The notes under the pieces: generated by a model
Database searches by the model: none
Told to the model about the DNA's origin: nothing
The model's input: the letters and a program-made list of their open reading frames with translations, nothing else
Program-made: the position numbers and the translations under genes
Part shown: positions 13,829 to 64,000 of the stretch, piece after piece
Layout of the letters: every line of letters starts with the position of its first letter
How positions within the stretch are numbered: the stretch's first letter is position 1
Assembly: GCF_001194135.2 (NCBI RefSeq)
Contig: NC_069006.1
Location: forward strand, 23,026,976-23,090,975
Origin: Octopus bimaculoides
Taxonomy: Eukaryota
Reading direction: 5' to 3'
Length of the DNA: 64,000 nt

Positions 13829-14240
13829 ATGATTGTAGTTGTTTGTATATATGCAACATATCTATAGAGGAAAACAGTAAAATTTCTTCTCAATTCCAGA
13901 ATCATGTGATTTGAGAGGAAGTTTCTCCAGAGATCCAGATTTAACAACAGAGAAATGTACCTGTAAGGTAAGTCTTTGTTCTGATCAAGGCTTGTTATGT
14001 CAAAAAGAAAGAAATGAAGAGGAGAAAAAACACAGATTCCACAGGCCACATTTCGGCAGCTCATCTAAGAGTGCAGTAACACAATAAAAGGCACCTAGCC
14101 CATGTTACAAAGTCTGAAGTCCTTCAATATAGTGGAAGGTACACTAGATGCCGAAATATCGTTCACTTGATAACAGTGACACTCTTCTTTTTTTTGCTTC
14201 TGTATACCTTCTGGAGGAGTTACCTCAATCCTATAAAATA

Positions 14241-14296
<56 letters not shown>

Positions 14297-32200: not shown

Positions 32201-33244
32201 TGAAGATGCAGGCGAATATACGTGCACTGGGTCTGATCCTGGTGGCATTGTAACAGATACTGCTTTTATCACTGTCACATGTGAGTATTATGCCCTATGA
32301 ATCAGGATGATTTTTTTTTTTGTTGTTTTATATTGATCCTTCCTACTTAATGTATGTATAAATCAATATATACTGTCCATATTTTGTATGAAACATATCT
32401 CCTGATAACCTTACAAAAATTCTGCTAGACCAACTAAGATATACAAATTTAAATAGAAATCAGAAAAAAATTAATTTTCCTGCATCTTCTATCCTACATT
32501 AAATTGAATGCTAACCTTTTGATGGTAAGATTTTTAATGTGGAATTTTTGAAACAACTTATTCCAGCACAACCTTTAAAGTTCTTGGCTGAAACATTGTC
32601 ACTGTGAATGTTTGTATTTTTTTTTATAGTCAGGAGGAAAGGCGGTGCCTAATACCCTTTACAGAGCATCTAAGACTTTCTTGCATACTGAAATTATTAC
32701 TACATGAAGAGGTTGTGAAATGGCCATAATTCTATGCAAATTATGTGGTTAAATATACCTCCTGATTTTATGTTTATATATATACCTCCTGATTTTATGT
32801 TTATATATATATATCATCATCATCGTTTAACGTCCTCTTTCCATGCTAGCATGGGTTGGACGATTTGACTGAGGACTGGTGCAACCGGATGGCTACACCA
32901 GGCTCCAATCTAATTTGGCAGAGTTTCTACAGCTGGATGCCCTTCCTAATGCCAACCACTCAGAGAGTGTAGTGGGTGTTTTTACGTGTCACCCGCACGA
33001 AAACGGCCACGCTCGAAATGGTGTCTTTTATGTGCCACCCGCACAAGAGCCAGTCCAGGGGCACTGGCAACGATCTCGCTTGAAAACCCTACAAGGCCAG
33101 TCAGGCGGTACTGGCAACGGTCACGCTCAGGATGGTACATCTTATGTGCCACCCGCACAAGAGCCAGTCCAGGGGCACTGGCAACGATCTCACTTGGCTT
33201 GCCGGGTCTTCTCACGCACAGCACATTTCCAAAGGTCTCGGTCA

Positions 33245-33275
<31 letters not shown>

Positions 33276-34070
33276 AACTTTCAGTTTTGCATTCATATTT
33301 ATGTTAAATTTAAAAAAATTATTTACCCATTACTGTTTGATTCTGTTTTCCTTCAGCAAATACTTACCCTCCAACTGCCCAAGTTGAACCAAGGGAACAG
33401 ACTGTTGTAGTTGGCCAAACTGTTGAATTTTTATGCACAGCAACAGGCTTTCCACAGCCAGAATTTCAATGGTATAAAAATGGTCAGCTTATTTCCCGAG
33501 GACCAGTTCTAACTCTCACATCAGTTTCCAAAGATGATGAAGCACAGTATGTTTGCGAGGCCACCAACAAATTTGGCGCAAGCCGAGTAAATGGAATACT
33601 ACATGTCACATCAAGTGAGTATTTCTGCACTAAATGATAGTGATTGATATAACAAACTGAAAAATATCTTACACCTTGAAACATGAGGTCAATAATAAAG
33701 ATATATTAATCTTATGAACGTCTATTTTATATTTTTATTTCTTTCAAGACTAAAATTAAGCTTATTTTTAAATTGCAGGTCGTCCAACATTACAAATTAT
33801 TATCCGACAAGAATCTGTGGTCAAAACTGTCGGAGAAAGTATTCAGTTGGTCTGTTATGTTGAGCAACGTGGTAATCTGATCAATTTAGTATGGAGCAAG
33901 CAAAATGGACAACTACCAGCAAGTAAGAACACTGTCAACCAGTGTGTGTTTGTGTGTGTGCATGTAAGACGTAGTTTGTTACATGTTCATTTTATACAAG
34001 TATGTATGGTATATAGATTATATACATATATATACACACATACATATAAATGCATGCATATATATCTATA

Positions 34071-35425: not shown

Positions 35426-36597
35426 GTATGGCAGGCTTCTTTCAGTTTCCATCTACCAAATCCACTCTCAAGGCTTTAGTTGGCCCAAGGCTCACACACT
35501 GGGGCCTAATCCAGATTCTTGTGGTTGGAAGCAAGTTTCTTACCATACAGCCATACCATATAACTGCAAAAGACAAGGATGGCAAAACGGGGTTACGCAA
35601 AGCCAGTAGCTCAAACTGGATTAATATATAAAAATCTACAAAGGTTATTGTGGCAAAGATACCAGATTAGAATTTTACTAAAACTTTCAAGACACATTAG
35701 CAATGTTCCTCCACTTCTTTGATAACTACTTTGCCTCTCTATAATTCTATACTTCTTTCTTTTTTTACAAGGTTTCGGGCAATGTTCTGAGAATCACAGA
35801 AACAATGGTTGAAGACCGTGGAATCTATGTTTGTGAGGCCAGAAATGTTGCTGGTTCTGTTCAGGCATCAGTGATTGTTGAAGTTGAAAGTAAGAGCCTT
35901 TAATTTGTTTTCTGCTTGATCTTCTAGCATTTTTGCTTAAGTGGTGGTATACATCATTGCTTAGATTTCACTTTATGGATAAACCTTAATCAGCTGTTCT
36001 TTTTTTTTTTTTTTCTATTATTATTTTGCTTTGTTAATCTTAACTGAAACCTTGTACTTTTATCTCTGTAGGGAGAGAATTGCCTGCGATAGACCTTTAT
36101 CCAAAAGGAACCCAGAGTATTCAGAGTGGTGGTAGTGCACTGTTCCAATGTAGAGCAACAGCTGGAATTCCATCACCAACAATCACCTGGAAACGGTAAG
36201 ACCTTAGAGATANNNNNNNNNNNNNNNNNNNNNNNNNNNNNNNNNNNNNNNNNNNNNNNNNNNNNNNNNNNNNNNNNNNNNNNNNNNNNNNNNNNNNNNN
36301 NNNNNNNNNNNNNNNNNNNNNNNNNNNNNNNNNNNNNNNNNNNNNNNNNNNNNNNNNNNNNNNNNNNNNNNNNNNNNNNNNNNNNNNNNNNNNNNNNNNN
36401 NNNNNNNNNNNNNNNNNNNNNNNNNNNNNNNNNNNNNNNNNNNNNNNNNNNNNNNNNNNNNNNNNNNNNNNNNNNNNNNNNNNNNNNNNNNNNNNNNNNN
36501 NNNNNNNNNNNNNNNNNNNNNNNNNNNNNNNNNNNNNNNNNNNNNNNNNNNNNNNNNNNNNNNNNNNNNNNNNNNNNNNNNNNNNNNNNNNNNNNNN

Positions 36598-45500: not shown

Positions 45501-47050
45501 CTTGAACTTAACAAATGGCACACTGTACGTCTGAAGAGAGACCGTAAGGAAGGTAAGCAGTAAACTCTTAATAGAATCTAATATTTCCAATTTGCTATTC
45601 AGAATTCCAAATATGTAGTCATGCATGATTGATTAGGCAATATTTGTTGCATGAATGAAACTATATATTTCCAGTAAACCAGCTAAATTGGTTCTGATTA
45701 ACACAGGTCATATGGTGAAATGAGTGAACCAAATTACTGTCTACTATATATTTGATCACTATAAACAAATCATCTGTACAGTTTGTTCAGAAAGAAATTG
45801 CAGAACTCTCGTCCATCATCCATGACAAGAGAGTCCATGATATATTTCTTCTACAATATATTCTGATTTTCTTTATATTTTTCTCCATTAGGTAAACTTA
45901 TTATTGATGGCCAACCTTTTGTTGGCACTGCACCAGGACCATTCCAGGGACTTGACCTCAACCAACCTTTGTACCTTGGAGGTTTACCTGACTTCAATGC
46001 CATTCCTCAGTCCGTTGGTTTTGACAGAGGATTTGTTGGTAAGTTCATTATATTATCATTATACCTTTTTGTTTTTTGTTTTTTTCCTGTATTCTAAAAT
46101 AACTGAAGTGTGATGAAAATGGGAAGGGTTGGGGAAAAAAAAACTTTGTGGTATTTAGTTAATCCTGAAATGAATCTGCAAGAGTCGGCTTTTCAATTTG
46201 TCCTTTCTGGGTTGATAAAATTCAGTGACAGTCAAATACTATTATTGATGCAATTGACTGTTCCTCTCCCTCCCTCCTTTGAAAAAAAGTGACTATAATG
46301 CTATAATGGTGATGATAATGACAGTGATGAGTGGAAGATATTGATGAAAATGATGAAGCAGAAGATGAAATGCTAATAATGGCCGTAATGTTGAGGAGGA
46401 AGAGGAGGACGATGGTGGCAACAACGATGATGATTGGCTGAAAAAGAGGAAGATGGTGAGAAAGTAACAGTGATGAAGACGTGATGATGGCAAAATTTCC
46501 AAGATTTTAATTTGTTTTTTTTTGTCTTTTTTATCCCATAGGTGGAGTGAGTCAAGTGGTAATTGGAGGCCAGGAATTGAACCTTGGAGGTGATGCAACT
46601 CAAGTGGTTGGCATCAGACAAGCAGATGTGTGCTCTGCGTCACCTTGTTTCAATGGTGGAACATGTGTTCCAAAGAATTCTGAATATGGTTTTGCTTGCT
46701 TCTGTCCACAGGGCTTTGCAGGTTACCAATGTGACACTGTTGGAGAACGTTGTTTCCCAGGTAAATTACATCAATTATTTCATTTCTTTTTTCTAGGTGC
46801 AATCCCATGGTCATTCGTGACTGAAAGGATTTTTACTTTACATGCTCTGAGTTCAGATTTCTCCATATTTGCACATCACCTTTGTAGAAACAATACAATT
46901 AATACTGGCAGTTTGGCAGTATACTTTAGTGAAACATTTTACCATCTGTGCTAAGTTACAATAGTAAAATTTGTATTTTAGTAAGGGACCAATATTTTTT
47001 TCTTCAAACAGTAAAACGTGTGTGAGAGAGAGAGAGAGAGAGAGTGTGTG

Positions 47051-47094
<44 letters not shown>

Positions 47095-47730
47095 NNNNNN
47101 NNNNNNNNNNNNNNNNNNNNNNNNNNNNNNNNNNNNNNNNNNNNNNNNNNNNNNNNNNNNNNNNNNNNNNNNNNNNNNNNNNNNNNNNNNNNNNNNNNNN
47201 NNNNNNNNNNNNNNNNNNNNNNNNNNNNNNNNNNNNNNNNNNNNNNNNNNNNNNNNNNNNNNNNNNNNNNNNNNNNNNNNNNNNNNNNNNNNNNNNNNNN
47301 NNNNNNNNNNNNNNNNNNNNNNNNNNNNNNNNNNNNNNNNNNNNNNNNNNNNNNNNNNNNNNNNNNNNNNNNNNNNNNNNNNNNNNNNNNNNNNNNNNNN
47401 NNNNNNNNNNNNNNNNNNNNNNNNNNNNNNNNNNNNNNNNNNNNNNNNNNNNNNNNNNNNNNNNNNNNNNNNNNNNNNNNNNNNNNNNNNNNNNNNNNNN
47501 NNNNNNNNNNNNNNNNNNNNNNNNNNNNNNNNNNNNNNNNNNNNNNNNNNNNNNNNNNNNNNNNNNNNNNNNNNNNNNNNNNNNNNNNNNNNNNNNNNNN
47601 NNNNNNNNNNNNNNNNNNNNNNNNNNNNNNNNNNNNNNNNNNNNNNNNNNNNNNNNNNNNNNNNNNNNNNNNNNNNNNNNNNNNNNNNNNNNNNNNNNNN
47701 NNNNNNNNNNNNNNNNNNNNNNNNNNNNNN

Positions 47731-48651: not shown

Positions 48652-51210
48652 NNNNNNNNNNNNNNNNNNNNNNNNNNNNNNNNNNNNNNNNNNNNNNNNN
48701 NNNNNNNNNNNNNNNNNNNNNNNNNNNNNNNNNNNNNNNNNNNNNNNNNNNNNNNNNNNNNNNNNNNNNNNNNNNNNNNNNNNNNNNNNNNNNNNNNNNN
48801 NNNNNNNNNAACAATATGCAACTTGTTCCGCTGTCAGTCTCTTATCTTGCTTCATCCAAAACTGCGTGAGATGATATAACCTTCACTTGCAGTCACTAAC
48901 ACTTGCACTGAGTAACTCTATACAATACCTTCTATTACAGCTCTCCCTCTCTCCCTCTCTCTCTTCTCTCTCTCCCTCTCTCTCTCTCTTTCTCTCTCTC
49001 CCCCTCTCTCTCTCTCGCTCTCTCTTCTCTCTCTCATTTTCACACTTTCCTGCTGCGTTTCACCTCCAATGGTTGTTTTCCAGTTTTGCTAACTTTTTTT
49101 TTTTTCCTTTCTCGTGTTTGATTTGTTCCTTACCTTCCATCATTTCTTGAAGGAAGGATAACCAATTCATTGCACATAAATTTTAACAACAAAATCTTCT
49201 ATGGACACCAAAGGACAATGTGGACCCTGGCTGAGCACCACTGATTTACTTAATGCAAGCAACACTTTCAAAAAAGACTAATTTGGATGGTCACAGTTGG
49301 AATGCCTTTGATCTACTGGTCATATTAATTGACCTGAAACTAAACAACAATGGCTTGACTTAGATATAAAGTAGATTCTATTAAGGTTCATTCAACTAAT
49401 TATATTTCTTCCTACACAGAAATTAACTTTATTCATAATCAAAGGATATTAATTAGTAACATACTCAGTTTATACTTGTATATGGTAAGTGTATATACTT
49501 GCAACCCCTCAAGGAAATTCATGTCTTTAATCCTTTTAATTTCTTTATACAAATACAAACTATCAATTCTCAATAAAATTATTAAATACATTTTCTATTC
49601 TTCATTTCACCTCCACCCTTTCAACATTTTTCATTTATTTTTTCTTGACCCCTGCTTTTGTCACCTGAATATACATCAACCTCAGGAGTAACAGTGAAAG
49701 ACCCATTCTTCAACAAGACCTCCTACATTTCCTACCCAGCTATCAATGACGGCCACAAGGTTTTAACTATTGACATCCAAATTAAACCCCACACTCTGGA
49801 TGATGGTATCATTCTCTATGAAGGTCAGCAACAGAATGGAAATGGAGATTTTGTTGCCTTGCTTCTTAAAGATCATGGCTATCTGGAATTCCGATTTGAT
49901 GTTGGATCGGGTCAGTATTGGTTCCATTAAATTCCTTTGTTTGATTTCAGTGGTTTTTGTTGTTGTTGTTGTTTTTTTCTTTTTTTGTCTGTTTAAATTT
50001 GTGTGGTAAAAAGAAAATTTGTTTCTTACAAAATTTTAAAGAACTTTTTGTAAATCTTTCATTGATATGAAAATAAAATAAAATAAAATAAGAGTAGTTT
50101 TAAAGAAGCTTGAAACAATCTATTCTGTTGGTAACAAAGAGTTTCTTTGTTCCTGAAAAAAAAAACAGACAAAGATACATATGTGTGATACTTATGAAAG
50201 TCATGAGTATTGAATGTGAAAAATCTGTACAAGTATCTTCTATAATCACTGGCTAACTAAAGCCTTGTGAATGGATTTGGTAGATGGAAACTGAAAGAAG
50301 CCTGTCATATATAGATATATATGTGTATGTGTGTCTTTGTGTCTGTGTTTGTCCCCTGCCACCATGTGACAACCAGTGTTGGTGTATTTGTGTCCCCATA
50401 ACTTACCAGTTCAGCAAAGACACCGATAGAATAAGTACCAGACTTAAAATAAGTAAGTCCTAGGGTCAATTCATTTGACTAAAAATTCTTCAAGGCAGTG
50501 CCCCAGCATGGCTGCAGATAAATGAGTGAACCATGTAAAATATAAAAGACAACTGCTTAGTTGTCCTTCTGTGCCACATCAATAAATTTCTATTTTCTTT
50601 TCGTCTCTCACCAGGCCCTGCTATCATCAGAAGTGCCGAGCCTATCAAGGCCAATGAATGGGTTAATGTTAAACTTCATCGCAAGGACAATGTTGGTATG
50701 TTGCAAGTAGGTGATAGCGCACCAGTGGAAGGTAAATGCTGTTTTTTATACTTTCTATACACCATACATTAATGTATATGTATGTGTATATATATATATA
50801 TATATATATGCCTTGGTGTATATGTGTGCATCTGTATATATACATGAGTGTGTGTGTGTATGTGTGTGCGTGTAATTCAGTCTAAATGCATAAAACATTT
50901 CAAACACTTTTGCTACCTGTTTTGAATATGAACTTTAAAACATCCGTCCTTCATAATCCTGCACACATGCATATCTCTCAGTTCTGTTATGACTAGCTTT
51001 CACTACTGCCATCACCTTCTTCCTCAATCCCCACCACTCTGAACTAAATCAAGGGATTCTTGTGACAGGAAAACTAAAATTGCTGTGGGTTCTCATACCT
51101 TTCCAACACTGACAGCATACAATGATTTTGGAATTAATTGTCACATGTGCATGCATGCATACATACTTGTGTATATATGTAAATACATGCATACTTGTGT
51201 ATATATGTAA

Positions 51211-51246
<36 letters not shown>

Positions 51247-51434
51247 GGGAGAATATACAAATAATAACATCAGACGAGGACAGGTGGTGTAAATAACAAA
51301 AGGATATATTAGTATGACGCTCGGGAATACGGAAAGTCTTTGACGTTTCGAGCTACGCTCTTCAACAGAAAGAATACGGAGACAAGGAGAAAATCACGGA
51401 GAAAAAAAATTGAATAGTGTTAAGTCAACGGTCA

Positions 51435-51470
<36 letters not shown>

Positions 51471-52023
51471 TATATAAAGGGCATTATAATTAATTATATA
51501 TAATTAAATATATCTATGAAGAAACAATGAATTTTTTCATTACGAAATTTTTCGTTATTTTTTCATTATGAGGTTTTTTCACGCTGACTACTTGATAAAT
51601 TCTTATAAAGAATTTATCCTATATTATATTATATATATATATATATATACATATCAGGACAATTACCCCCCATAGGACAATTACCCTCCTTGGTTAATTA
51701 CCCCCTCTCCAATATATTAAGAAGTTTTTAATCATTCATCTGGTCCATCTAACAAGCTTCCTTCTACACACACAGTTTTGCTGTCCATCAAATTTCACCC
51801 ACTTAATCTACAATTAACCTTACCTTCTATGTTGGTACTATATTTTATGCAACAATCATTACAGAATTGAGAGAATATGTCTCCAGCGCAAGACACGGAT
51901 ATGTTAAAGATCTTAATAATGGCAAAAAACAGATCTCTGTGAAACTTTCAAAACTTCCAAGAATGACTTCCATCTATCTAGTTAACTTATTTTTTCTTGT
52001 TTTATTCTATAAACATACATACA

Positions 52024-52059
<36 letters not shown>

Positions 52060-53230
52060 TATATATATTAACCTGACCATCTGTTTGCATTAGAATAATA
52101 TTGGATTTCCTGTCAGGGTAACTGAATTGTTAGTCTTTTGTGTTTCACTAATAACTAATCTGTAGAGTTGTTAGAAAACTAAAGAAATTCGAATGAAGAA
52201 TGATATCAAAACTATAAATTTTGTATGTTTAAATAATTTTCTTTTCTTATGTAACCTATAATTCTTTTGATAATCAGTGAAATATAAATTGTTGGAAATG
52301 AGAAAAGAGAAGAAAAATACCATTTTTCTCTTTAAAAAAAATAAAAAAGTTGTTTTATACACTCTATTAATCAATTTTCTATTTTTCTACTCATTATCAA
52401 TTTATAGCTGAAATAGCTGTGAAAAATTATCAAAGTGGACCTTAAATGTGAAGCTGTGCACATGATATTCTCTCATTCCATTTACTTGATATTCTTTCAT
52501 TCCATTAATATGATATTCTCTCACTCCATTAACTTGATATTCTCTCATACCATTAACTTACTGTTCTATTGTATTCATTTCTTGCTCTCTCCTGTCACTT
52601 AAAAAACTTCTTTACTCTTAGTAATTTGTAACTCTTACTTGGCATAAATATAACAAATTCTTTAACTTATTATTGCTACCTTTGTCAAGGATCATGGATT
52701 GGCAGAATCAACAGAGCATTAGAGAGAATGCCTGGTGATATTTCATTGTTTTGCTACGCTGTGTTTTGAGCTAAAATCCCATGGAGCAATGGAGGAGGAT
52801 GGAGACAGTTTTATCTTTCTTCCTGTTCTCTGGGGTCAGTTTTTACCCTTCATTCTTCCAGTGTCAGGAGGATGAAAGTAGCAGTCAAATACCCAAAGTT
52901 AATTTAATCAACTTTACACTTTGTACCTATCAAGAAATCATTATCAGCACTGTCTCTGAGGTTTTGAATTTGTGCCATGTTCTTGGCACTAATCTCTGCC
53001 TATTCCCTTTAGATTCCTTTTCATTACTCTCAGCGCACACTTAAAGTCTCTTTACTGTTCTACCAGGTCAAATCAAAGAGCTTAGTTCTTTTACAGATGA
53101 AGACCAATATATTCATTCCTCTATAAAAAAAATTAAAAAAATTTGCTTTGTTCTGCTTAGTCAAAAAACAAAAAGAATTAAAATTATTATTTTCAATATT
53201 ACTTCTTTCTGATGAATTCAAGTTCTTGGA

Positions 53231-53261
<31 letters not shown>

Positions 53262-56200
53262 GTCATTTTCTTTATTGGGGAAGATGGTCCAGCTATTGAA
53301 AAAAATCTATTCCATTAACCAGTTTCACTTATTTCCCCACTCTTTGATCTAACCAACACCAGCTATACCAGATTTAATAATATTAAAAAAGAAAACACAA
53401 GGATTTTTTGTCTCTTTTCATGTTGTATGTATTCTTATGTTTATTGTTGATGTTGTTCCTCTTAGTTTAGCAACTTAATGAATGTGTATTTTGATTGATT
53501 AATTAATCAATTAACTTTTTTGACATGTATTTTGTAACGAAAATGAAAAACCAACCAATTTTTTTTATTAATCGTCTTTCTACTGAATTTCTTCTTTTGT
53601 CCCCCAGTGAGACCTGGGAACACAGAAATAGTCTTGTCTCGAGGAGGTATATATGCTTATCTTACCTGTCTCTAGCATCTTTGCTGAAGTGGTCAGGTGG
53701 ATTGGCACTTCTTTTCCAGAAGTCTTCTCCACCTTTTATTAACAATTTTTTTCTCCTTTTTTTTCTCGCTCTTTCTCTCTGTCTCTTTCTGTCTCTCTTT
53801 ATTTCTGCCCAAAACTCAATAGAACAAAGACAGAATTTCTAAAGATGCATTTTCTAAATAGTTAGAAGAAAATATTTGTTTAGAACACAATAAATCAGAA
53901 CATCTAACCCATGAATATGTTGATACAGTTATATATTAGGAAAGCTTTAGCTTTGGAGATTACAGATGATATAGAAACATCCTATTGTTCTCTTGAGTTA
54001 TTTTTCTGACAACTTAAACTTGAGAGAACAATAGGACATCTACATCATTTGTGGTCTCCACAGTTAATGCTTCCAAATAAATAATTGTAGTTATATCTAC
54101 ATTATACATGTTACAAGTATTCTAATATTTACATTAATAGTAATATCTGTAAAGATTTTGAAAAACCTTGCTCAGGCTTTCACATTAGAGAGGAACTTTT
54201 CAGCTTCTGGCCCATAGTCCTACGAGATATATGGAAGCTCCAGAAAGTGTTGACCAGACAAAATGTTTTAGTAGACAACTTAACAAACAGATTAAACACA
54301 GAAATTGATCAGTAAGTTAATGTTGACATATTTAATGAATGATGCATAAAAATAGCTAAGTAGAAATTAAAATGTGGGAGATAAACAAATCATAATTCTT
54401 CAGTGATTCCAATTTTGTTGAAATTGTGACACTCCACCAAAATATGTGGCCTTGTGCAAATGCGAGGAATCAGTATTGTTTTTCAACAAGCATGGGAGAT
54501 AACTACAAATATGTTTCAGTATTATTATGACTTCATTAGTGAAGCCTAATCTTCACCATGCTTGATGAAGTAGTGAATATACATATTGTGTATTCATTGA
54601 GTATAGGAAAATAGATTTGTTTAGAGGTTCAATAAGTCATTACTGCCTTGTACATAGAGCACAAGAGGTAAAATTAATGTTAACATATATGAAAATCATA
54701 TTAGTCAATGACTTATATTGTTTTCTTCTGTTTTTTTTTCTCATTGCGTATTTATTTTTGATAGTTTTACAATGTTTCCTGCTTTAAATGTATTAGCACT
54801 AATTTACTTATTGTTTTTTTTTATGTAGCTGACATCTGTGATTCAATTGAGTTGTTAACAAATTGTTTTACCTGTCTAATTCATTATACTATAATAACTG
54901 CAGCTACACTGCTTGTCAATTCAATTTCTAGGTTTAAACTCAGACAGGGAGTTGGATGACTTTTACATTCTTCATCGACTATAAATATTAGTTTCAATGA
55001 CTTTTCATAAAGGGAACATAGTATTAGTGAAGAAAAAAACTATTATAATATTACAAATGTAATAACATTTTTGATAATCAAATAGTTATCTGTTTATTTT
55101 GCCGTCTAAACCAAACTTAAATATCATTTCTAAATTCTTTGATTATTCAGTCATTGATTCTTTTGAGTTTTGGGAGAAATATCTAACACAAATTCTACTC
55201 AGCTTTTTATTTTTTATTTCATTTTTATTTATTTTTTTCATTATGATATTTTATTTACATTTTTATTTATTTTACTTTCTTTTTACAATTTATTTTAAAC
55301 ATACCCTCTGCCGGCCTTTTGTTGTCACACGAGAGTATGCACCAGTTTCAAAACCTTTTTCTCAGGCTTCACTTTGCTTCAATTTCTCCTGAATTTTACC
55401 CTTAATCGGGGCACTCTTTCAGCAATGAAACCAAACAGTTTTAATATCCTCTATATTTGATTCTTAATGTCCTATATATTTGATGAAAATATTTCTGTCA
55501 CATTTTGATATTGATCTTTTGAGAGTTAATACAATTGGGATCAGACATAGGTTTAATTGACTATTTCTCCATATTGTTCTTATTAATGACCTTTATATCA
55601 TCTAAGTAATTGTATGGTAGGAATAAACCAACTAGAGAATGACTTCGCATTTTATGTGTCTCTGGTACTAAAATATATCAGTACCAGCTATATACTGAAG
55701 TCGGCTCAGTTGTCTATATTTCCTACTCTGACAAAATTTGACCTGAATTGATTGCATACAGAATTCATTGTGTCTACACTCCAAGAGTTATCCTTGTTCT
55801 AATTCATCTTAATTCACCAGCCCACTCTCACTCTTTCACACATTGGCATGTTGTGTTTACCTCTTGCTTGTTAGCAATATGTCTTTAATGGCAGCTATTT
55901 TATTCCCCTTTCTCTTCTATCAAAACCTTGAAAATTTGCTGTCAGTTCTGATGTTCACCTCACTTCTAGCTAAGCCAGTTCTGTTATGCTCATTCCACTC
56001 TTTTCTAAAGCAAACATCCTGCTACTCTTCACAAGGTTACTCTCTATACTTACATCTGCACCTCACCTTTCTGCTTATTTTAACTTTGTCTTATTCTATC
56101 TGTATGCTGTAGATCACAACTCTATTATTAATTCCATACATGAGAAAATTAGCGTTGAAGACAAATATTTGATGTTAAAAGGGCCCAGTGAACAACAGAC

Positions 56201-59200
56201 CTCAAACAGTGCATTTTGGAAGGAATAGCAGTACTTTCCTGTCACCCACCTGTAACAACAGCTACTATATAATCATCAGTTCTTGTTTTCATCATCATTT
56301 TCGTCATCTTCATAACATGATTAACTTAATGTACTATTTATTGAGTATATTTTATTAATTACTTAGATGTTTCAGCCAAAGATTTGCCCAGGCCATGTCT
56401 AACTTAATATCACCACTTGATTAGAAATCAAATGTTTATAAGCTGCTAATAATTGTCATAGTGATCTCTACTCATGCAAATCAATGAAGAATGTACACTG
56501 AAACATGGTCTAGTCTTTTAAGATTTTCTTGTTTTCTGTGGAAAATACAATTAGTTTCCTACTCTTTGAGGTGACAGCTATTGACTTGTTCTTTATAAAA
56601 ATATTATTTAGAACAGAATATGATTGGCAAAATATGATTTAGAGTTGTTATCATGCTGCCAAGATCTTAGACATTCACCAACTGCATTGTCTACATTCTA
56701 TTTTTAATTAATTTTAATGAATTAAAATATTGAAGTTGTCTATTCTGCCTTCATTAACCACAATTAGTCATTATGCTAATGATTCTGTCCCTTCTCCATA
56801 TAGTTCACCGCATTATTTCTGTTATCACCAACTTTACTTAGATGTAGATACCAAAAATACCCAGATATCTTACAGTTCTAACTTCAGTGTCTTATTTCTA
56901 GTTTTGAATTTAAATCCTGCTACAATCTACTGAAAAATATCATTCATAAGTATTAGGGAAATAAATATCAACAGAAAAATATTTTTTTGGTTGTAAACCT
57001 AAACCTAATATTTAATTATTTAACTAACTACAAAATTAAGCAACCCACATCTTTTTAGGACAGTCACAAATTCCATCATAGATTTGCTACTGTTAAATTA
57101 ACACCATTCGAGTAGAGAAGCAGTAAATATCATAAGTGAAACATGAAAGTTTTGATCTCTTTGAAAATATTTCTTCTATTTTATCTTCCACTAAATATTA
57201 TCAAAGACATATTGCTGAAAGGTGCTGCTTTACCCTGGCTTTTCTTCTTGGAAAATAAATTCATCTGAAATATCATCTCTAGCAACCTTTTGCAATAATC
57301 TTTCCTAGTTTAAAACCTAATAGTCTGTTATACTTGTACCTTCAAAATTCCTGCTGCACTGTTCCAAACATGGCTACAAGTTAACAAAGTTCATTTTCTA
57401 ACGTGCAGTTAAACAGTAACACAGTGCAAGATTATTTCTGTCTGTAAAAGCCATATTACCCCGCCCAAACACTAACAGTGCAGGTAAAAATATGATGGAC
57501 AAATATAACAGACTTCAAGTTACACTCTGCTTCTGTTACATCCCATAATTCTCTTGACTTTTTTACACTTTCCACTGCATGAAAGTCACAATATTCTGCT
57601 TTCACCATCACCACCATCTTCACAAAATCCACCTTTTTGTTTTTACCATTAAATCGACCTTTTCATTCTTTATCTCTCTTTAGCCATGAATTCCTACAAT
57701 TATTATCATTGCACCTCACTTGCTGAATAATTTTTTGTGAATAAATGTATTAAAAATTCCATGGAAATATAAACTACTTTTATATACTTTATAAATTTCT
57801 AGGTTTAATTATCTCCCTTAAACAAGTTTCTCACTTTACCTCCCTTCACAATGCTTTTTCTTTGATAGGTTGGTACTCTGACTTGGTACTCTGNNNNNNN
57901 NNNNNNNNNNNNNNNNNNNNNNNNNNTATATATATATATATCTGTACTGAGCCTGTTTTCCTCTTGTTTGGAAATTCAGACATACATGCACACGCATATA
58001 TATATGCTCATACACTTCTTATCTTGTATATATTTCAGTTCATATTTCTTGGAATTTTTTTCTTTTTGCTTAATTTTCTTTTAATTAGATAAAAAAAATA
58101 AATAAATGTATACAATTATTGCTGACAATTCAAAGTAAATGCATGTATGGACATAGTTAAGTCAAAGATGTTCTAAGTATATTGCACGACATTCTTGAGA
58201 GCAGAATTTGCCTCCATCAGTATTACTACATATAACAAGCAGATAGTTGTAGTGATTTTAGTTATGGTACGTATTAGTTATAAAGGCCTTTGTAATGTGT
58301 AGAAATAGTCCTGTTGTTTGCTGCATGTATTAGTTTTTATATACTTAGAAAGAGTAATAGTAATTTCTTTTTGGGGTATCATTAAATAGTAAAGGTAAAA
58401 CTATATGGAATTAGTACATACCACTAGAACATAAATTAAATATAATCTATTTTATTCATGTATTTCTACTATATTACTAAATTAATTGCTCTACTCCACC
58501 ATCTCAAAAATATTTGCAAAAACCCATCACATAGAATAAAATATTTAATAATTTTCCCAATAACTGGCTGAGGAAAAAAAATAATGAATTAAATAGCTTA
58601 AAAAATTTAATAATAAATAATATATATATATAACTTGCTGGTACATATGATTAAATAGTGTGTTCCCTTCTAAAGAACACAAATCATTCTTGCCCCTGTT
58701 GATAACTTTTGAATTTATTATAGCACTTCTATTTAGTTGATTTTTTTCTTTTTTTAGAGGCTGTGCTCTCCTCCCTCTTAGGTATAGTGGACTCTGCTTC
58801 TGATTAAAATGTTGTCCTTGTGAGATCCCCCAAATGATTGTCTCAAACAGCTGAAACGTATTCAATTAAAAGCAGGATGGTCTAATGATATTGGACTTCT
58901 GTCTTGAAAGCTTGTAAGGTTTACATCCACTGCAAGCATTCCATTATCCTTCTAAATAAAATACTTCTTTATTCTACAACACCCTCCTCCATTTACCTGA
59001 CAGTGAAATCAAAGAAGGCCGTTATTCCTAATATTCACAAAAGATTCAATCTACAACATTGCATGAGTCCACATATGGATAAAGCCTCATTAATTGTATG
59101 CAGAAGTGCATAAAATATATAGACAACTCTCTTCATCTTATATCCTTTATGTAAAATATTTTATTTGGATAAAATATTAGTTTGTGAATTGGACTTTACA

Positions 59201-62200
59201 AATTTGTTACAAAAGTAATTTTTGAAGTTTCCAATAACAAGGTGCTTCCTTCTGTTGATTAACTAATGATTAGGGATATTGTTATGAGCTCCCCACAGCA
59301 GAAGAGACCCATACCTCACAGCAGATGCGTTAAAACTGATCCTTCTAGTGGTGTAAAGCACTCGCAGCAAAGCCACATAAAAGTGCCCTTGTGGTGCCAC
59401 TTAAAAGCACCTGTGTGGTGTCACATGAAAGCACCTGTGTCATGCTACATAAAAGTACCCATGTAGCCTCATGTAAAAGCATCTGTGCAGTGCCACATAA
59501 AAGCACCCAGCACTTTCTGTAAAGTGATTGGCATTAGGAAGGGCATCCAGCAGTTGAAACCATGCCAGATCAGACTGGAGTCTGATGCAGCCAGCTCTGG
59601 TCACACCATCCAACCCATGCCAGCATGGACAGTGGACATGTAAATGGTGATGATGTTTAACATTACATTTAGTGCTACTATATTTGATTAACTTAATAGT
59701 TCATTAATGAGTGATTTCAAATAGGCAGGAGAATATTTATAATAGTTTTAAAACAAAGTTCAGTTTTTATCTCTGTTAAATTTAGGGTTGGGTGGGATTA
59801 GATAGACAGAAAGGTAACCCATAGACAAATTTAACTTATAGGAACTCTGCTGGTATATAAATATGCTAAGTCAGCTCTTCTGTTTAAATAATAAACAAAC
59901 AGAAAATGAATATTATTAAATCATAAATGTAAGATGACTTAAAGAAGCAGATTAATTTAAGGAAAATAGATTAAAAAATTAAGTACAACAATGATAACAT
60001 TTGTTTTAATCTAAATTTCTGGAAGTTATATCAGGTAACAAATATTTAAGAAAAACCCAAAAGGAATTATCCCCTTTTTCTTTCATTTTATTTCTAGCCG
60101 CTGATGATGAATTGCCCCGCTTGCCAATAGGAAAGTGATATTTGTCATGCTTCTTACCATTTTGTTTTGCTTGTGTTGTGATGTGTTTTTGAGTGTTGTT
60201 TTTATTTTTATTTTGTTACTTTGTGATTCTATATTCTTTTACATTCTATTTTCTATGTTTATTTTTGTTCAGTGTTTCTTGAACAGATTGCTATGTTATC
60301 TGGAGTGTGCCTTGTAAATAAATAACCCTTTAGCATTCATGCCAGCCTAATCTATAATATTTAGTCAAACCAACCTAATCTGTAATTTTTAGTCAAACCA
60401 ACCTAATCTGTAATATTTTTTCAAACCAGCTCTACTCACCTTGTACTATGTTTTGTACTATGTTAACTTTACTCCTTGACAAAAAATCCCACTCTCAGTA
60501 AATTTTATAAAATGTCACACTTTTCTTTGTTTCATAATTTCCTTATGATTTCATTGACATATCTGAATGCTGAAGGGCTAAACAAACAAGTTGTGTAATG
60601 TGTTAAAACATAACCCAGTTTAATCTTCTTTGCTACTGTTTGTTGTTGTTGTTGTAACCATTTACCATTCAAACTGTCCAAATCTAGCATTTGTAAAATA
60701 TCACTCTATTTGTCTAAACTGAGAACTTTATGATATGTAGCTACTGGTAGCAGGAAAAGTTTCTACTGAATCACATTTTATCTTAGTCATATTGTTTCTT
60801 AGTTTAATATGTTGTTCATGAATGTTGATATTTCTAACACCATTAATACCATGAATGCTATTGGTTTAAACTATATATATATATATATATATATNNNNNN
60901 NNNNNNNNNNNNNNNNNNNNNNNNNNNNNNNNNNNNNNNNNNNNNNNNNNNNNNNNNNNNNNNNNNNNNNNNNNNNNNNNNNNNNNNNNNNNNNNNNNNT
61001 ATATATGATTTAAACAACTAGCTACAAATATTTTCCTAATTAATCTCTATTTTTTCCCTTAAAATTAACCATACAAAGCATTATTATTTAAAAGATTAAA
61101 GCATTTAAACATGAACTGCATTAAACATACCATGTTGGTAAATAAATGTTAACAATGAAAACGAGGAATTAATGAAATTTTTTTCTTCTTAATTTGAAGT
61201 TCTAAAAGAATTTGTTTTAACTTGTTTTAAAATTAATTAAATATAAATTATTTATTTTTTCAAACTAAACTTATAAACTAATATTTCATATATTAAAATA
61301 AGAAAATGCACCTTGAAGTGAAGAAGGAAAATTAATTAGCAGAGGAAAAGTTCTTGCATATTTTGTTGTTTCTTTGAATCAATAATTTTTATTTTTGTTA
61401 TTCTTTCTTCTGATTAATTAACTAATTTTTAATTATATAATACAACTATACAGAATAAATAACCAACAGAGAATATAAATAAATATAATATATTTTTAAT
61501 TATTGCTGTAAAGTAATTTTGGAGTTTAAAACCCGTAATACTTGAAGAGAGATAAGATATGAATCTAAATATCTATCTTTAGATTGATTTCAGTCTAACA
61601 AGAAAGTTTGTAATTTTGGCAATTCAAAGATGCTGATTCACTATTATGTTGGATATTGTGATTTTTCAGTTGCCATGCACAAGCTTTCTTTCTCACTCTT
61701 ACATTCCACCTCTCTTTTACATATACTTGTAGTTTTAATTTCAAATTTACCTTACAGCAGAACTAAATGTGTTTTCACAAACAGAATTAACCTGAATTTT
61801 TTAATATAAAACCATAGGAAATACATCAAAATTTCCTAAAATTAACAACTGGGGAAAATTTTAACCTTGAATGACCAAAATGTCTGTGTTTAATATTTTG
61901 TTTCTCTTTTTGTCTACAACTTGTGTGAAATAACCATTTATATTTCTTTTTCTTCTCCTTTTATGTTGTCTTTCTCATGCTACATTGTCTTCTAATTGTT
62001 GGTCTGTTTCTCCTTCTATCTCTAGCTAGCATGTGGGTCTTCAAAACATATGGTTTTGACAACTAACTTGTGGTCGCCCATTCCTTCTTTATCTTACAAA
62101 TTTAAATATATAGATCATTCAAATAAATATTTTAACTGTTACACCACCACAAAACCTTTTCCCTCCAAATTATCAACTTCTTCCAAATTCTACCAAAAGC

Positions 62201-63731
62201 AACTTTGTCATTCAGCCTTCTGAAGGTGATAAACTGAAGTATAAGTCAAGCACTGAGGATGATTTTATCATCTGAAAATCTCCTAAAATTCATGACCTTA
62301 TGTGTATGTTAGCATGTCACACAAAATGCTCAACAGCATTTCCTCTGGCTCTTTATGTCCTAAGCTCAAATTCAGTTGAGGTCAACTTTACTCTTCCTGC
62401 CCCTAGGGTCAATCAAATAAGAAGCAGTTGAGCACTGGGGTCGACGTAATCAGCTTATATCATCCTTTGAAATTTTTGTCCTTGTGCCAAAATTTGGTTA
62501 AGTGTGGCCTGTAATTAAACAACAGCAATAGCAGCAACACCACCAATTTCAGTGTCAGTTTTATTATTGGTGTCTTTGTATCCATTTGGTTGTCCAAAAT
62601 TGTCACAAGCTCATGTTGGACATTATAAACATAATGATGTAAAAACAGAAGACTATTTTTATTTTTGTTTTCAGTTTAGTAAGAGAAGGAGAAGGAGACA
62701 GTGTTTGCAAGAGAGATCAACCATCTTGAATTTTAACAAACTAACTCAATTGTCTAATATCCTTCGACTACACACATACACAGAGGCAGTTTTTCCCCTA
62801 GAATGACCTTAACTGCAGTGGCTAAAACAAATAAATCACACACAAACATCCACATGCATGCACACATACACAAATTTCTGAATTTTTTTGCTTTTTATCA
62901 TTTTGTATTCTTTTTCCCCCTGTTGATGGGGCAGGTGGGGGCAGGGTTTAAGGACAAGATTGTGCATTTCTTTGTTGTCTTTTTTGTTTGTTCTTTGTCT
63001 TTGTTTTGGTTTCTTAGAATTTCCTGATTACTTTCTTCTTTTTATTTATTCCTCTTTGCTTATTTTATTTCTTTTCTTTTCTTTTTTTTTATTTCAAAGG
63101 AATGTCACTAATATTCATTTAACAAAATAAACTATCTTACAAAAATACATACATTGGTATATCTTTCACTTCTTTCTCTTTATCTATCTACCTATCTATC
63201 AATATTTGTTTATATATATGTATATTATATATATATATAAATGTGTGTGTATTTGTATAATATGTATATGCCACAAAAGTTTTGATTGTGGATATCAAAA
63301 GATATTGTACTTACGTAATATAATTTTGAAGTAACACTCACACACACATATATATATATAGAAGGTATGATACAAACTATTGGTTATGCATGGGTTTTTT
63401 CATGTTATATGTTCTTGAAGAAACAATTTTCATATCAGTACATATTTACTCGAAATATAAACTTATAAATGTAATTCTTTATTATAAAATAAATTACGGA
63501 TGATTACATTTGTAATTTTCATAGTGAGGAAATATGTGCAGGCCTGGAGCTTGTTTTCTGAAGGTCAGAAACATGGAATAACCCATTTGTATTCAATAGT
63601 TTGTACTACTATANNNNNNNNNNNNNNNNNNNNNNNNNNNNNNNNNNNNNNNNNNNNNNNNNNNNNNNNNNNNNNNNNNNNNNNNNNNNNNNNNNNNNNN
63701 NNNNNNNNNNNNNNNNNNNNNNNNNNNNNNN

Positions 63732-63765
<34 letters not shown>

Positions 63766-64000
63766 TTATATACATATATATTCACATTCATACCCACATA
63801 TACACACACTCACACATGTACACATAGATATATACATATACATTGGTATATGTGTGTTTGCGTTAATATAAATCTATATAAACATGTGTAATTCTTTATC
63901 TTCTTAATAGATTCTTCACCTGGAAGCCGAGTTGGCTTAAACCTGCGCCAGCCTCTGTACTTGGGTGGAATTGACCCACAATACAAAGTTGCTGATGGTA
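118..64000 (+). CDS. HSPG2: Perlecan (basement membrane heparan sulfate proteoglycan core protein), multi-exon, partial at both ends; 69 exons traced
   Basis: Spliced translation gives Ig x4, LDLa x3, Ig, 3x(laminin-B + laminin-EGF), Ig x12, LG1, EGF, LG2; the LDLa-to-LG2 part of this order is diagnostic of perlecan. All introns are GT-AG with compatible phases. No start or stop codon in the window. Confidence 0.96.
496..565. repeat. Perfect 35-bp tandem duplication
   Basis: TATTGGTCAGCATGAGGTTATGGTAGAAGACAAAT x2. Confidence 0.9.
1378..2507 (+). CDS. HSPG2: Perlecan N-terminal Ig domain b (exons 1378-1502, 2363-2507)
   Basis: [22 protein letters not shown]|[29 protein letters not shown]; 125+145 nt. 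Confidence 0.9.
2098..2263 (-). mobile_element. Fragment of dispersed repeat family A (SINE/LINE 3' tail family)
   Basis: CAGCTGGATGCCCTTCCTAATGCCAACCACTC..TTTTACGTGCCAC; matches copies at 17783, 23719, 32815 and 59372. Ends approximate. Confidence 0.75.
3418..4043 (+). CDS. HSPG2: Perlecan N-terminal Ig domain c (exons 3418-3542, 3899-4043)
   Basis: [22 protein letters not shown]|[29 protein letters not shown]; 125+145 nt. Confidence 0.88.
4496..5761 (+). CDS. HSPG2: Perlecan N-terminal Ig domain d (exons 4496-4620, 5617-5761)
   Basis: [22 protein letters not shown]|[29 protein letters not shown]; 125+145 nt. Confidence 0.9.
5021..5190 (+). mobile_element. tRNA-derived SINE-like repeat, family B
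   Basis: GGCTGTGTGGTTGAG..GGTTCAGTCCC head, then GATGGAAACTGAAAGAAG; similar to 16946-17252 and 50250-50535. Ends approximate. Confidence 0.7.
6316..7345 (+). CDS. HSPG2: Perlecan domain II: three LDL-receptor class A repeats (exons 6316-6456, 6547-6666, 7214-7345)
   Basis: [35 protein letters not shown]; [35 protein letters not shown]; [36 protein letters not shown]. Six Cys and the DxSDE motif in each; all phase 1-1. Confidence 0.95.
7508..7727. mobile_element. piggyBac-like MITE
   Basis: TTAA at 7504-7507 and 7728-7731 flank inverted termini TCCTTTAGCATT / AATGCTAAAGGG. Confidence 0.7.
8429..8716 (+). CDS. HSPG2: Perlecan domain II Ig domain (single exon)
   Basis: [44 protein letters not shown]; the WRLNWG motif is typical of this perlecan Ig. 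Confidence 0.95.
9238..11840 (+). CDS. HSPG2: Perlecan domain III-1 laminin-B (IV type A) domain (exons 9238-9362, 9464-9643, 10117-10209, 10676-10759, 11065-11207, 11732-11840)
   Basis: [29 protein letters not shown]|[46 protein letters not shown]. Confidence 0.94.
10270..10520 (+). mobile_element. tRNA-derived SINE-like repeat, family C
   Basis: GAGTTCAAATTCTGCCGAGGTCAACTTTGCCTTTCATCCTTTC..AAGTACCAG core; further copies near 18700-19110, 21655-22025, 24620-24775, 52700-52990 and 62330-62495. Ends approximate. Confidence 0.7.
12108..14589 (+). CDS. HSPG2: Perlecan domain III laminin-EGF repeats, block 1 (exons 12108-12218, 12578-12699, 13099-13247, 13900-13967, 14449-14589)
   Basis: [21 protein letters not shown]|[25 protein letters not shown]|FTKKC..|[23 protein letters not shown]. 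Confidence 0.94.
14244..14295. repeat. (ATT)n microsatellite
   Basis: Long uninterrupted ATT run; one of many (AT)n, (CA)n, (CT)n and (ATT)n intronic microsatellites, several beside N gaps. Confidence 0.9.
14962..18604 (+). CDS. HSPG2: Perlecan domain III-2 laminin-B domain (exons 14962-15144, 15796-15888, 16555-16638, 17453-17571, 18496-18604)
   Basis: [13 protein letters not shown]|[48 protein letters not shown]. Confidence 0.94.
16946..17252 (+). mobile_element. tRNA-derived SINE-like repeat, family B
   Basis: GGGTTCAGTCCCACTG..ACCTTGGGCAAGTGTCTTCTAC..GAAACTGAAAGAAGCC..AAGTACCAG. Ends approximate. Confidence 0.72.
17783..18082 (+). mobile_element. Young copy of repeat family A ending in (GAT)n
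   Basis: GGCGTTAGGAAGGGCATCCAGCTGTAGAAACTCTGCC..CCAACCCATGCTAGCATGGAAAGCGGACGTTAAACGACGATGATGATG. Confidence 0.8.
19175..22311 (+). CDS. HSPG2: Perlecan domain III laminin-EGF repeats, block 2 (exons 19175-19288, 19515-19642, 20833-20919, 21042-21100, 21445-21527, 22171-22311)
   Basis: [27 protein letters not shown]|[20 protein letters not shown]..|[17 protein letters not shown]. Confidence 0.94.
20111..20617. mobile_element. 212-bp Penelope-like terminal-repeat fragment present twice (20111-20322, 20406-20617) on either side of an N gap
   Basis: The two copies look identical; a third copy lies at about 51246-51439; a hammerhead-like motif is on the minus strand. Confidence 0.6.
23176..25621 (+). 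CDS. HSPG2: Perlecan domain III-3 laminin-B domain (exons 23176-23367, 24167-24262, 24826-24909, 25391-25621)
   Basis: [13 protein letters not shown]|[47 protein letters not shown]. Confidence 0.94.
23719..23923 (+). mobile_element. Repeat family A copy
   Basis: GGCACGTAAAAGCACCCACTACAC..GGAAAGCAGATGTTAAACGATGAT. Confidence 0.78.
25818..30067 (+). CDS. HSPG2: Perlecan domain III laminin-EGF repeats, block 3 (exons 25818-25934, 26441-26568, 28799-28885, 30006-30067)
   Basis: [21 protein letters not shown]|[31 protein letters not shown]|FSPTC..|[11 protein letters not shown]. Confidence 0.93.
27158..27509 (+). mobile_element. HINE/Helentron-like non-autonomous element
   Basis: 5' subTIR ACCTCTGCC (27162-27170), 3' subTIR GGCGGAGGT (27477-27485), then terminal hairpin GCGCTC-TCT-GAGTGC (27488-27502) and a T-rich end. 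Confidence 0.65.
30407..32280 (+). CDS. HSPG2: Perlecan domain IV Ig1 (exon 30407-30679) and Ig2 (exons 31189-31292, 32109-32280)
   Basis: [21 protein letters not shown]; VQMECTVVG..|[15 protein letters not shown]. Confidence 0.93.
32815..33243 (-). mobile_element. Young repeat family A copy with internal duplication
   Basis: Reverse complement of 17783-18082; the segment TTATGTGCCACCCGCACAAGAGCCAGTCCAGGGGCACTGGCAACGATCTC occurs twice. Confidence 0.8.
33357..34964 (+). CDS. HSPG2: Perlecan domain IV Ig3 (exon 33357-33614) and Ig4 (exons 33779-33922, 34827-34964)
   Basis: [32 protein letters not shown]; [22 protein letters not shown]. Confidence 0.92.
34194..34424. mobile_element. Fold-back (palindromic) MITE-like element
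   Basis: Arms of about 105 bp are near reverse complements around a short AT spacer. Confidence 0.8.
34991..35047 (+). mobile_element. 5'-truncated 3' tail of repeat family A
   Basis: GTCAAATCGTCCAACCCATGCTAGCATGGAAAGCGGACGTTAAACGATGATGATG. Confidence 0.8.
35172..37126 (+). CDS. HSPG2: Perlecan domain IV Ig5 (exons 35172-35320, 35772-35889) and Ig6 (exons 36072-36195, 36972-37126)
   Basis: [18 protein letters not shown]..|[11 protein letters not shown]; [19 protein letters not shown]|..[11 protein letters not shown]. Confidence 0.93.
38014..40600 (+). CDS. HSPG2: Perlecan domain IV Ig7 (exon 38014-38280), Ig8 (exons 38750-38839, 39600-39779), Ig9 (exon 40340-40600)
   Basis: [24 protein letters not shown]; VIVKCESQ|..[15 protein letters not shown]; [21 protein letters not shown]. 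Confidence 0.92.
40850..44094 (+). CDS. HSPG2: Perlecan domain IV Ig10 (exons 40850-41012, 41506-41603), Ig11 (42268-42354, 42506-42688), Ig12 (43136-43268, 43967-44094)
   Basis: [26 protein letters not shown]; VEFDCIVST|..IQWSK..DAGTYKC; [25 protein letters not shown]. Confidence 0.92.
42424..42502. repeat. (CAT)/(TAT)n microsatellite abutting the acceptor of exon 42506
   Basis: The repeat runs directly into ttcag (AG at 42504-42505). Confidence 0.88.
44919..46760 (+). CDS. HSPG2: Perlecan domain V LG1, EGF1 and start of EGF2 (exons 44919-45032, 45373-45552, 45892-46038, 46542-46760)
   Basis: [85 protein letters not shown]1 fits the C2-xxxx-T-C3 O-fucose consensus. Confidence 0.94.
49686..50731 (+). 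CDS. HSPG2: Perlecan domain V LG2, first part (exons 49686-49910, 50615-50731)
   Basis: [44 protein letters not shown]|[18 protein letters not shown]; ends in phase 1. Confidence 0.94.
51246..51439. mobile_element. Third copy of the Penelope-like fragment, embedded in (TA)n
   Basis: Near-identical to 20111-20322 and flanked by (TA)n on both sides. Confidence 0.65.
52462..52560. repeat. Minisatellite, unit of about 24-25 bp, x4
   Basis: TGATATTCTCTCATTCCATTAACT-like units. Confidence 0.8.
53608..53646 (+). CDS. HSPG2: Candidate alternative 39-nt microexon in LG2, (V)[12 protein letters not shown]
   Basis: Acceptor ttcttcttttgtcccccag, donor GAG|gtatat, 39 nt, phase 1-1, no stop, more GC-rich than its flanks. 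No transcript evidence available. Confidence 0.55.
57451..57483 (+). CDS. HSPG2: Candidate alternative 33-nt microexon in LG2, (A)[10 protein letters not shown]
   Basis: Acceptor ttatttctgtctgtaaaag, donor CAG|gtaaaa, phase 1-1, open frame. Confidence 0.3.
58758..58781 (+). CDS. HSPG2: Candidate alternative 24-nt microexon in LG2, (E)AVLSSLL
   Basis: Very strong acceptor tttttttctttttttag, donor TAG|gtatag, phase 1-1, open frame. Confidence 0.4.
   Translation, partial: RLCSPPS
59372..59655 (+). mobile_element. Diverged repeat family A copy with an internal tandem array of about 24 nt
   Basis: About six GCCACATAAAAGCACC-like units (59372-59508) precede GGCATTAGGAAGGGCATCCAG..CCAACCCATGCCAGCATGG..TGATGATG. 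Confidence 0.72.
60098..60138 (+). CDS. HSPG2: Candidate alternative exon in LG2, (A)[12 protein letters not shown]; 3' boundary ambiguous
   Basis: Very strong acceptor cccctttttctttcattttatttctag followed by a GC-rich, codon-like segment in phase 1. Confidence 0.4.
60326..60577. mobile_element. piggyBac-like MITE (same terminus type as 7508-7727)
   Basis: Termini CCCTTTAGCATTCA / TGAATGCTGAAGGG; degenerate TTAA-like flanks; internal 30-bp duplication. Confidence 0.6.
63911..64000 (+). CDS. HSPG2: Perlecan domain V LG2 continuation (exon truncated by window end)
   Basis: Acceptor ttcttaatag at 63910; phase 1 gives (D)[29 protein letters not shown], continuing LG2 in frame. Confidence 0.92.

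Follow-up and report, generated by a model that had tools for sequence, protein, structure and literature searches.

The 64,000-nucleotide (nt) stretch of Octopus bimaculoides DNA analysed here (contig NC_069006.1; hereafter the window) carries on its plus strand a gene that, judged by the order of its modules, is an orthologue of perlecan (HSPG2 / trol / unc-52). The order taken as diagnostic of a perlecan runs colinearly on one strand from LDL-receptor class A through Ig, laminin-B/laminin-EGF and a long Ig array to LG-EGF-LG. A long intron within the second laminin G (LG2) domain of this gene contains a 39-nt segment, at 53608-53646, that may serve as a cassette exon and would, on inclusion, complete an Arg-Gly-Asp (RGD) motif. 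With eight perlecan queries in tblastn, ~50 colinear coding blocks of the window matched annotated perlecans. Pfam recognised Ldl_recept_a, Ig/I-set and EGF modules, all above the curated cut-offs, together with Laminin_G at 1e-21; a match to EGF_laminin was weak (E 0.005) and lay under the Pfam cut-off. The domains at the 3' end of the window follow the order Ig - LG1 - EGF - LG2, and perlecan domain I and LG3 fall beyond the window limits. The best full-length relatives (gastropod, bivalve and nemertean) bear the name perlecan and are 40-44% identical to the window gene, and a Logan contig from a closer relative shares 83% DNA identity with the window.

The coding sequence of LG2 is split over three exons on the plus strand. 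The first (49686-49910, its start approximate) was placed by open reading frame (ORF) translation and tblastn and ends ..FRFDVGSG in phase 1; compared with a contig of a related species, it shows ~95% identity, and the flanking intron shows ~85-90% identity plus indels. The second exon (50615-50731; Pfam Laminin_G_1, 1e-21) ends in phase 1 within the J-K loop of the domain, and the third (63911-64000), which was aligned to agrin LG2 and perlecan LG3, begins AT-TCT.., encodes the J-K-loop Ca2+-ligand region and strand K, and continues past the window end. Between the second and the third lies a phase-1 intron of 13,179 nt (50732-63910), which harbours the candidate exon and is broken by three N gaps, at 57894-57926, 60895-60999 and 63614-63731; 256 nt of the intron are therefore unread and could in principle conceal further small exons. 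The window as a whole has 11 N runs (for example, 47095-47730 and 36213-36597), most of them bordered by (TA)n microsatellites.

A candidate cassette exon in the J-K loop of LG2

The candidate exon stands in the context ...tttcttcttttgtcccccag/TGAGACCTGGGAACACAGAAATAGTCTTGTCTCGAGGAG/gtatat (slashes mark exon borders) on the plus strand. It is stop-free and in phase 1 at both ends, begins with a Val codon, finishes within an Asp junction codon and is 62% purine. The 3' splice-site AG and its polypyrimidine tract (tttcttcttttgtccccc-ag, 17/18 pyrimidines) occupy 53588-53607, preceded at 53580-53587 by a putative branch-point region, ctactgaa, whose A at 53586 lies 22 nt 5' of the exon and matches yUnAy only in part; AG is absent between this A and the candidate 3' splice site. 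The candidate 5' splice site, GAG/gtatat (53647-53652), fits the consensus well at -2, -1, +3 and +6. By its sequence signals alone, the segment thus has the make-up of a small cassette exon, being 39 nt long, frame-preserving and provided with AG and GT, and the description of this candidate microexon in the first-pass annotation proved exact to the base.

The upstream exon ends at 50731 as ..CCAGTGGAAG/gtaaat (..GTG GAA G/gtaaat) and the downstream exon begins at 63911 as aatag/ATTCTTCACC (AT TCT TCA CCT). In the skipped form, GAA G/AT TCT gives E-D-S and the loop reads PVEDSSPG at canonical length; in the included form, GAA G/TG AGA ... CGA GGA G/AT adds 13 residues and no stop. With ..CGA GGA G at the 3' end of the candidate and AT at the start of the next exon, inclusion would create R-G-D, and the motif arises only when 53646 joins 63911 directly. 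The junction sequences bear out, in this respect, the earlier statement that RGD requires inclusion and direct joining and that skipping leaves PVEDSSPG. The predicted junctions are CCAGTGGAAG/TGAGACCTGG and TCTCGAGGAG/ATTCTTCACC for inclusion and CCAGTGGAAG/ATTCTTCACC for skipping. In the skipped form, the junction codon G/AT (50731/63911-63912) encodes Asp at a position that is Gly in nearly every related LG domain (PV-x-G-x-SPG). The idea that inclusion restores a conserved K/R-G-x-SPG register was dropped, since the skipped form aligns residue-for-residue with canonical loops except for this G-to-D change.

The position of the insert can be read from homologous domains of known structure. 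The best solved-structure match of LG2 is the agrin C-terminus (8s9p; E 4.5e-47 for the whole chain and 1.9e-17 for the LG2 stretch), and the isolated agrin LG2 structure (3pve) matches at 1.5e-20. Alignment to agrin LG2 and neurexin places the 13.2-kb intron in the LG2 J-K loop, beside the Ca2+ site, with the loop named as in PMC6450144. According to the same source, residues of the J-K loop serve as Ca2+ ligands in agrin, in perlecan LG3 and in neurexin, the neurexin ligands I236 and N238 lying a few residues past splice site 4 (SS4). The insert thus falls in a rim loop (J-K, alias beta10-beta11) next to the Ca2+ site. We also modelled the insert-bearing LG2 (a domain truncated by the window end) with AlphaFold2, which gave a mean predicted local distance difference test (pLDDT) score of 75.6 and a predicted template modelling score (pTM) of 0.76. 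The LG sandwich was retained, its core blocks having a pLDDT of 85-92, and residues 116-129, with RGD at 123-125, formed a loop with pLDDT <50 between well-modelled strands. The insertion point, at the Ca2+/ligand rim and in a known hot spot of splice inserts, and the modelled loop together support the suggestion, made from the letters alone, that the RGD would sit in an exposed loop.

The interruption of this loop is not shared by the neighbouring domain. The J-K loop of LG1 (45892-46067) lies in a single exon with no intron, in the window and in two other mollusc loci. In one of these, a contig from ENA ERZ25071447 (L004), the LG2 exon ends ..GTT AAT G/gtaggt, at the same position and in the same phase as at 50731. 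At the level of gene sequence, an intron at the insertion site is thus specific to LG2 and common to another mollusc. The second of these loci (L003; ENA ERZ25073293 ctg33379l) has at 13991-18863, between LG1 and LG2, ~36 tandem units of 136 nt that are 96-97% identical, in each of which an EGF-like coding stretch (CGPKGRCYNLDGGLAGYRCVCPLGKTGAGCQ) runs into gtaagt; the period is not a multiple of 3. Either the array is a satellite of exon plus mini-intron or it arose as an artefact of assembly.

Splice signals in the 13-kb intron

The candidate was scored with splice models trained on 26 acceptors and 23 donors from the same gene, training sites that were chosen semi-automatically and are therefore biased toward consensus. 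In-frame, stop-free AG..GT segments number 359-388 in the LG2 intron, the count varying with the length limit and the handling of N runs. When a reduced-alphabet pyrimidine-tract model of the acceptor is combined with a position weight matrix (PWM) of the donor, the candidate ranks 1/388. Its acceptor scores 4.6 bits under this model, at the 62nd percentile of the acceptors of the gene (9/563 decoy AGs score equally), and its donor scores 6.7 bits, at the 26th percentile of the donors (14/628 decoy GTs equal). By codon-usage log-odds, the candidate falls among the top 3% of stop-free windows of the intron and at the 37th percentile of windows from real exons, and its GC content is 0.49, compared with 0.41 in coding sequence and 0.30 in the intron.

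Similar segments also arise by chance. In 300 Markov-simulated introns, a segment equal to the candidate on both splice sites was present in 9.7%, and the same summed splice score was reached by a mean of 0.5 segments per intron. A segment that would form RGD occurred in 5% of the simulated introns, and in 0/300 did it have splice signals equal to those of the candidate; this last comparison is post hoc, the motif having been picked out once it had been seen. The splice signals are therefore good but not decisive: the candidate leads the segments of its intron, and signals alone do not prove that it is used. It does not resemble neural microexons of the SRRM4/eMIC type, being 39 nt long (vs <=27 nt) and having no TGC in the 60 nt upstream.

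Further open segments lie nearby. A second in-frame, stop-free candidate cassette of 21 nt, ctctag/CATCTTTGCTGAAGTGGTCAG/gtggat, occurs at 53676-53696 and reads ASLLKWS; it lies only 29 nt 3' of the 39-nt candidate, too close for both to serve in one transcript, so that at most one of them would be used. A 33-nt in-frame candidate with a poor pyrimidine tract, aaaag/CCATATTACCCCGCCCAAACACTAACAGTGCAG/gtaaaa, is found at 57451-57483, and its use after the 39-nt exon would preclude RGD. In addition, a downstream GT at 53667 would give an open 60-nt version of the candidate exon, from a donor (ACCT/gtctct) that fits the consensus at 4/9 positions vs 6/9 for the donor at 53647. Apart from these segments, an imperfect palindrome of ~171 nt (53924-54089; 75% self-complementary) lies ~280 nt 3' of the candidate and might be either an element that forms a hairpin or a small transposon with inverted repeats. 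Elsewhere in the introns of the gene, a dispersed repeat, probably a SINE-like element (short interspersed element), occurs at least three times (32950-33384, plus strand, two copies; 17770-18021, minus strand).

Inserts at the same junction in other perlecans

A HMMER scan of 1.84 billion representative proteins yielded the closest LG2 domains, which were then aligned. All of these closest domains contain an insert of 8-29 residues exactly between ..PV-x and G/x-SPG. The carriers, annotated as perlecans, are three snails, a scallop and a nemertean. In Bulinus truncatus KAH9504451.1, the junction reads EPIN-EQVAANDEQVYAHLARGDVVR-GSTPS, and KAH9504452.1 differs only in ..RGDVIR... The other inserts are ESVN-AQVAANDRQLY.. 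in Biomphalaria (A0A2C9KC15, a model that afterwards runs into junk), EPVT-AQAQPDANSFYTSSSWSTRSYY-GGNTG in Elysia (GFR68365.1), EPVK-VWPWSYYRDQYRNYYNYHLHRQYRYRRA-ATSPG in Ylistrum balloti (XP_060073482.1) and MTVK-VANPSFEA-GISPG in Tubulanus (XP_074655738.1). Arthropod and other perlecans in the aligned set have no insert, and the loop-spanning stretch is exactly 30 residues in 287/375 LG domains of the 149 representatives that were aligned. The first inserted residue is always V, A or E, residues with G-NN codons, as a conserved phase-1 intron after G predicts. Between Bulinus and Biomphalaria, the start of the insert is kept at least as well as the LG2 domain. A lineage-specific insert within the LG2 phase-1 intron thus looks, from these sequences, like a general lophotrochozoan feature, and the presence of inserts at this junction raises the prior that the 13-kb intron of the window hides at least one such exon. 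The two Bulinus proteins are neighbouring models on the same contig, each with an LG2 that has the same RGD insert, and they represent either a perlecan 3' end duplicated in tandem or one gene that has been split or misassembled.

Both Bulinus inserts have RGD in their C-terminal part (..YAHLARGDVVRGSTPS, HLARGDVVRG), to be compared with ..VLSRGD.. in the window; RGD is absent from the inserts of Elysia, Ylistrum and Tubulanus. The motif occurs 77 times in 195,000 residues of these proteins, or 4e-4 per residue, and the chance of meeting it is therefore ~0.01 for the Bulinus insert and ~0.04 over all insert residues examined. This recurrence is suggestive of function, whether through conservation or convergence, without amounting to proof.

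A direct counterpart of the candidate was sought at several levels. Searching the intron by tblastn with the snail, scallop and nemertean insert peptides returned trivial matches of 4-5 residues only, and the 840 nt examined of the intron in the L004 mollusc contig gave no convincing insert exon. A six-frame search for an orthologous cephalopod intron, made with the open stretches around the microexon, found no match, nor did a scan of metagenome contigs with a degenerate DNA form of the candidate exon. Exact look-ups of the window ORFs found none on record, a profile search returned only short ORF-type fragments, and the protein collections searched contained no transcript-derived proteins of this species or its relatives.

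Possible use and function of the insert

Weighing the raised prior for an insert exon, the rank of the candidate, its exon-like composition and the Bulinus RGD on one side, and the weak donor and the comparable decoys on the other, we put the probability that 53608-53646 is a genuine cassette exon of the perlecan orthologue at about 0.5; such an exon would probably be optional. Several observations weigh against it. The donor is without +4A and +5G and belongs to the lowest third of the donors of the gene. Under a noisier 4-letter acceptor PWM, the candidate acceptor scores 3.0 bits (23rd percentile of the acceptors of the gene), and the candidate ranks 11/382 on splice sites and 4th when the codon score is added, the top rank under this combination going to 57451-57483. 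No enrichment of Rbfox, Nova or UGC-type motifs was found <=500 nt on either side. The inserts of the other molluscs cannot be aligned with that of the window and show no sequence similarity to it, and those inserts are taken from gene models. The RGD motif was selected post hoc in the first-pass annotation, and the Bulinus RGD lies 4 residues further from the junction, so that homology between the two motifs is not established. Finally, when the insert-bearing spliced LG2 served as a protein query, seven matches were returned, all from other species and all lacking the insert; this negative is weak, because the index missed an 86%-identical relative (P0168) that a later profile search found.

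These points lend weight to the reading that the segment is a pseudo-exon, a chance open stretch of intron with splice-like flanks that is spliced never or negligibly, the real insert exon lying elsewhere (at 57451-57483 or in an N gap) or there being none. With ~385 in-frame, stop-free segments in the intron, ten others that match the splice-site score of the candidate under the 4-letter PWM, an equal on both sites in about one simulated intron in ten, ~0.5 per intron at the same summed score and a skipped form that already has the canonical loop length, this is a real if somewhat doubtful possibility. What speaks for a genuine exon instead is that splice signals, exon-like codon use, RGD and an insert-bearing site coincide in one segment, that no simulation joined RGD to such signals, that RGD recurs independently in the Bulinus insert, and that the stretch is unique and not a repeat. 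A repeat or transposon origin of the candidate was dropped on the same ground, its sequence occurring once in the window.

If the exon is genuine, the most likely mechanism is one in which skipping would leave a canonical-length LG2 loop (PVEDSSPG) and inclusion would extend the loop by 13 flexible residues at the rim where the LG sandwich binds Ca2+ and ligands, altering the partner binding of this rim. Splice inserts in rim loops of LG/LNS domains are the classic partner switch of agrin and the neurexins, and it is as an extension of the ligand-binding rim that the window insert would act like agrin A/y and neurexin SS4. Similar to the window insert, agrin A/y (KSRK, 4 residues) comes from a tiny cassette exon and lies in the LG2 J-K loop beside the Ca2+ site; in contrast, it belongs to another gene, in vertebrates, and consists of four basic residues rather than 13 mixed ones, with no RGD. 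It also lies 4 residues past the window junction (RVLGESP-KSRK-VPHTVLNLKEPLYVGG, reading RVLGESP-KSRK-VPH), and because the insertion follows GESP instead of preceding G/D, the agrin intron is not the same as that of the window. In addition, the agrin isoforms are established experimentally, whereas the window insert is predicted from sequence. Neurexin SS4, a 30-residue insert in LNS6, is likewise a cassette in the equivalent LG/LNS loop (..VIERYPAG/RQLTIFN..) and toggles ligand choice, but it is longer, has no RGD and belongs to another gene family, encoding synaptic receptors rather than a matrix proteoglycan. The SS4 exon is flanked by long introns. Further parallels are the lophotrochozoan perlecan inserts, which share gene, domain and junction with the window insert, as well as a G-NN first residue and, in Bulinus, a C-terminal RGD; they differ in length (8-29 vs 13 residues), cannot be aligned, and in Bulinus VVR separates the RGD from the junction codon, whereas in the window the D itself is the junction codon.

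In the most specific version of this mechanism, the RGD created by inclusion would add an integrin-binding site. From sequence, we consider it unlikely overall that the insert RGD is a working, splice-switched integrin site; granted a real exon, a working RGD would be tentatively plausible, at somewhat under an even chance. Other matrix proteins offer partial precedents. In the fibronectin IIICS/V region, alternative splicing adds the integrin-recognition motif LDV to a matrix protein, and the RGDS in domain III of mouse perlecan indicates that perlecan is able to carry a working RGD; both differ from the window insert in domain and motif. To our knowledge, an RGD put together where two exons meet has no precedent in an LG-domain loop. 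In vertebrates, perlecan domain V does not need RGD to engage alpha2beta1 integrin. Binding of this domain to alpha2beta1, which the first-pass annotation had taken as established, agrees with PMC9010944.

A genuine cassette might also carry its RGD incidentally, the insert reshaping or masking the Ca2+-dependent alpha-dystroglycan/heparin rim of LG2 with no part for integrin. The homologous agrin domain has its KSRK insert in the same loop, adjoining the Ca2+ site, with the effect of adding heparin binding and reducing that of alpha-dystroglycan (PMC6450144); the J-K loop contributes Ca2+ ligands a few residues farther downstream, three lophotrochozoan inserts (Elysia, Ylistrum and Tubulanus) do without RGD, and the motif has 77 chance occurrences in the 195,000 residues of these proteins. 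Set against this, the window candidate and the Bulinus insert each have RGD, among only ~100 insert residues in total, and the prediction is of a flexible, exposed insert, the environment in which working RGD sites are usually found; we regard an incidental RGD as rather unlikely. Far less probable still is a real exon that never gives RGD, being always spliced to a further cassette or using the GT at 53667: in-frame candidates such as 57451-57483 do lie downstream, the 60-nt variant is open, and the snail inserts look as if built from two small exons, the Biomphalaria model breaking after ..AQVAANDRQLY where Bulinus reads on AHLARGDVVR, but the 53667 donor is the poorer fit to consensus and the nearest candidate, 53676-53696, is too near to act as a separate exon in the same transcript.

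Taken furthest, the genuine-exon reading would mean that mollusc perlecans toggle an RGD integrin site through one or more small LG2 J-K-loop exons at the dystroglycan/heparin-binding rim, with an RGD, present in a cephalopod-type genome (assembled across the junction) and in a planorbid snail, that has been conserved for >500 million years or has evolved twice. On present sequences, we hold this to be improbable. We know of no LG-loop splice switch described for perlecan. If the exon is real, it would extend the LG-loop splice code to a basement-membrane proteoglycan and would provide an unusual adhesion motif, one completed only through the joining of exons. Even if the 39-nt exon is unused, the lineage-specific inserts of lophotrochozoan perlecans offer a testable lead, located as they are at a single conserved phase-1 intron within a loop of otherwise invariant length.

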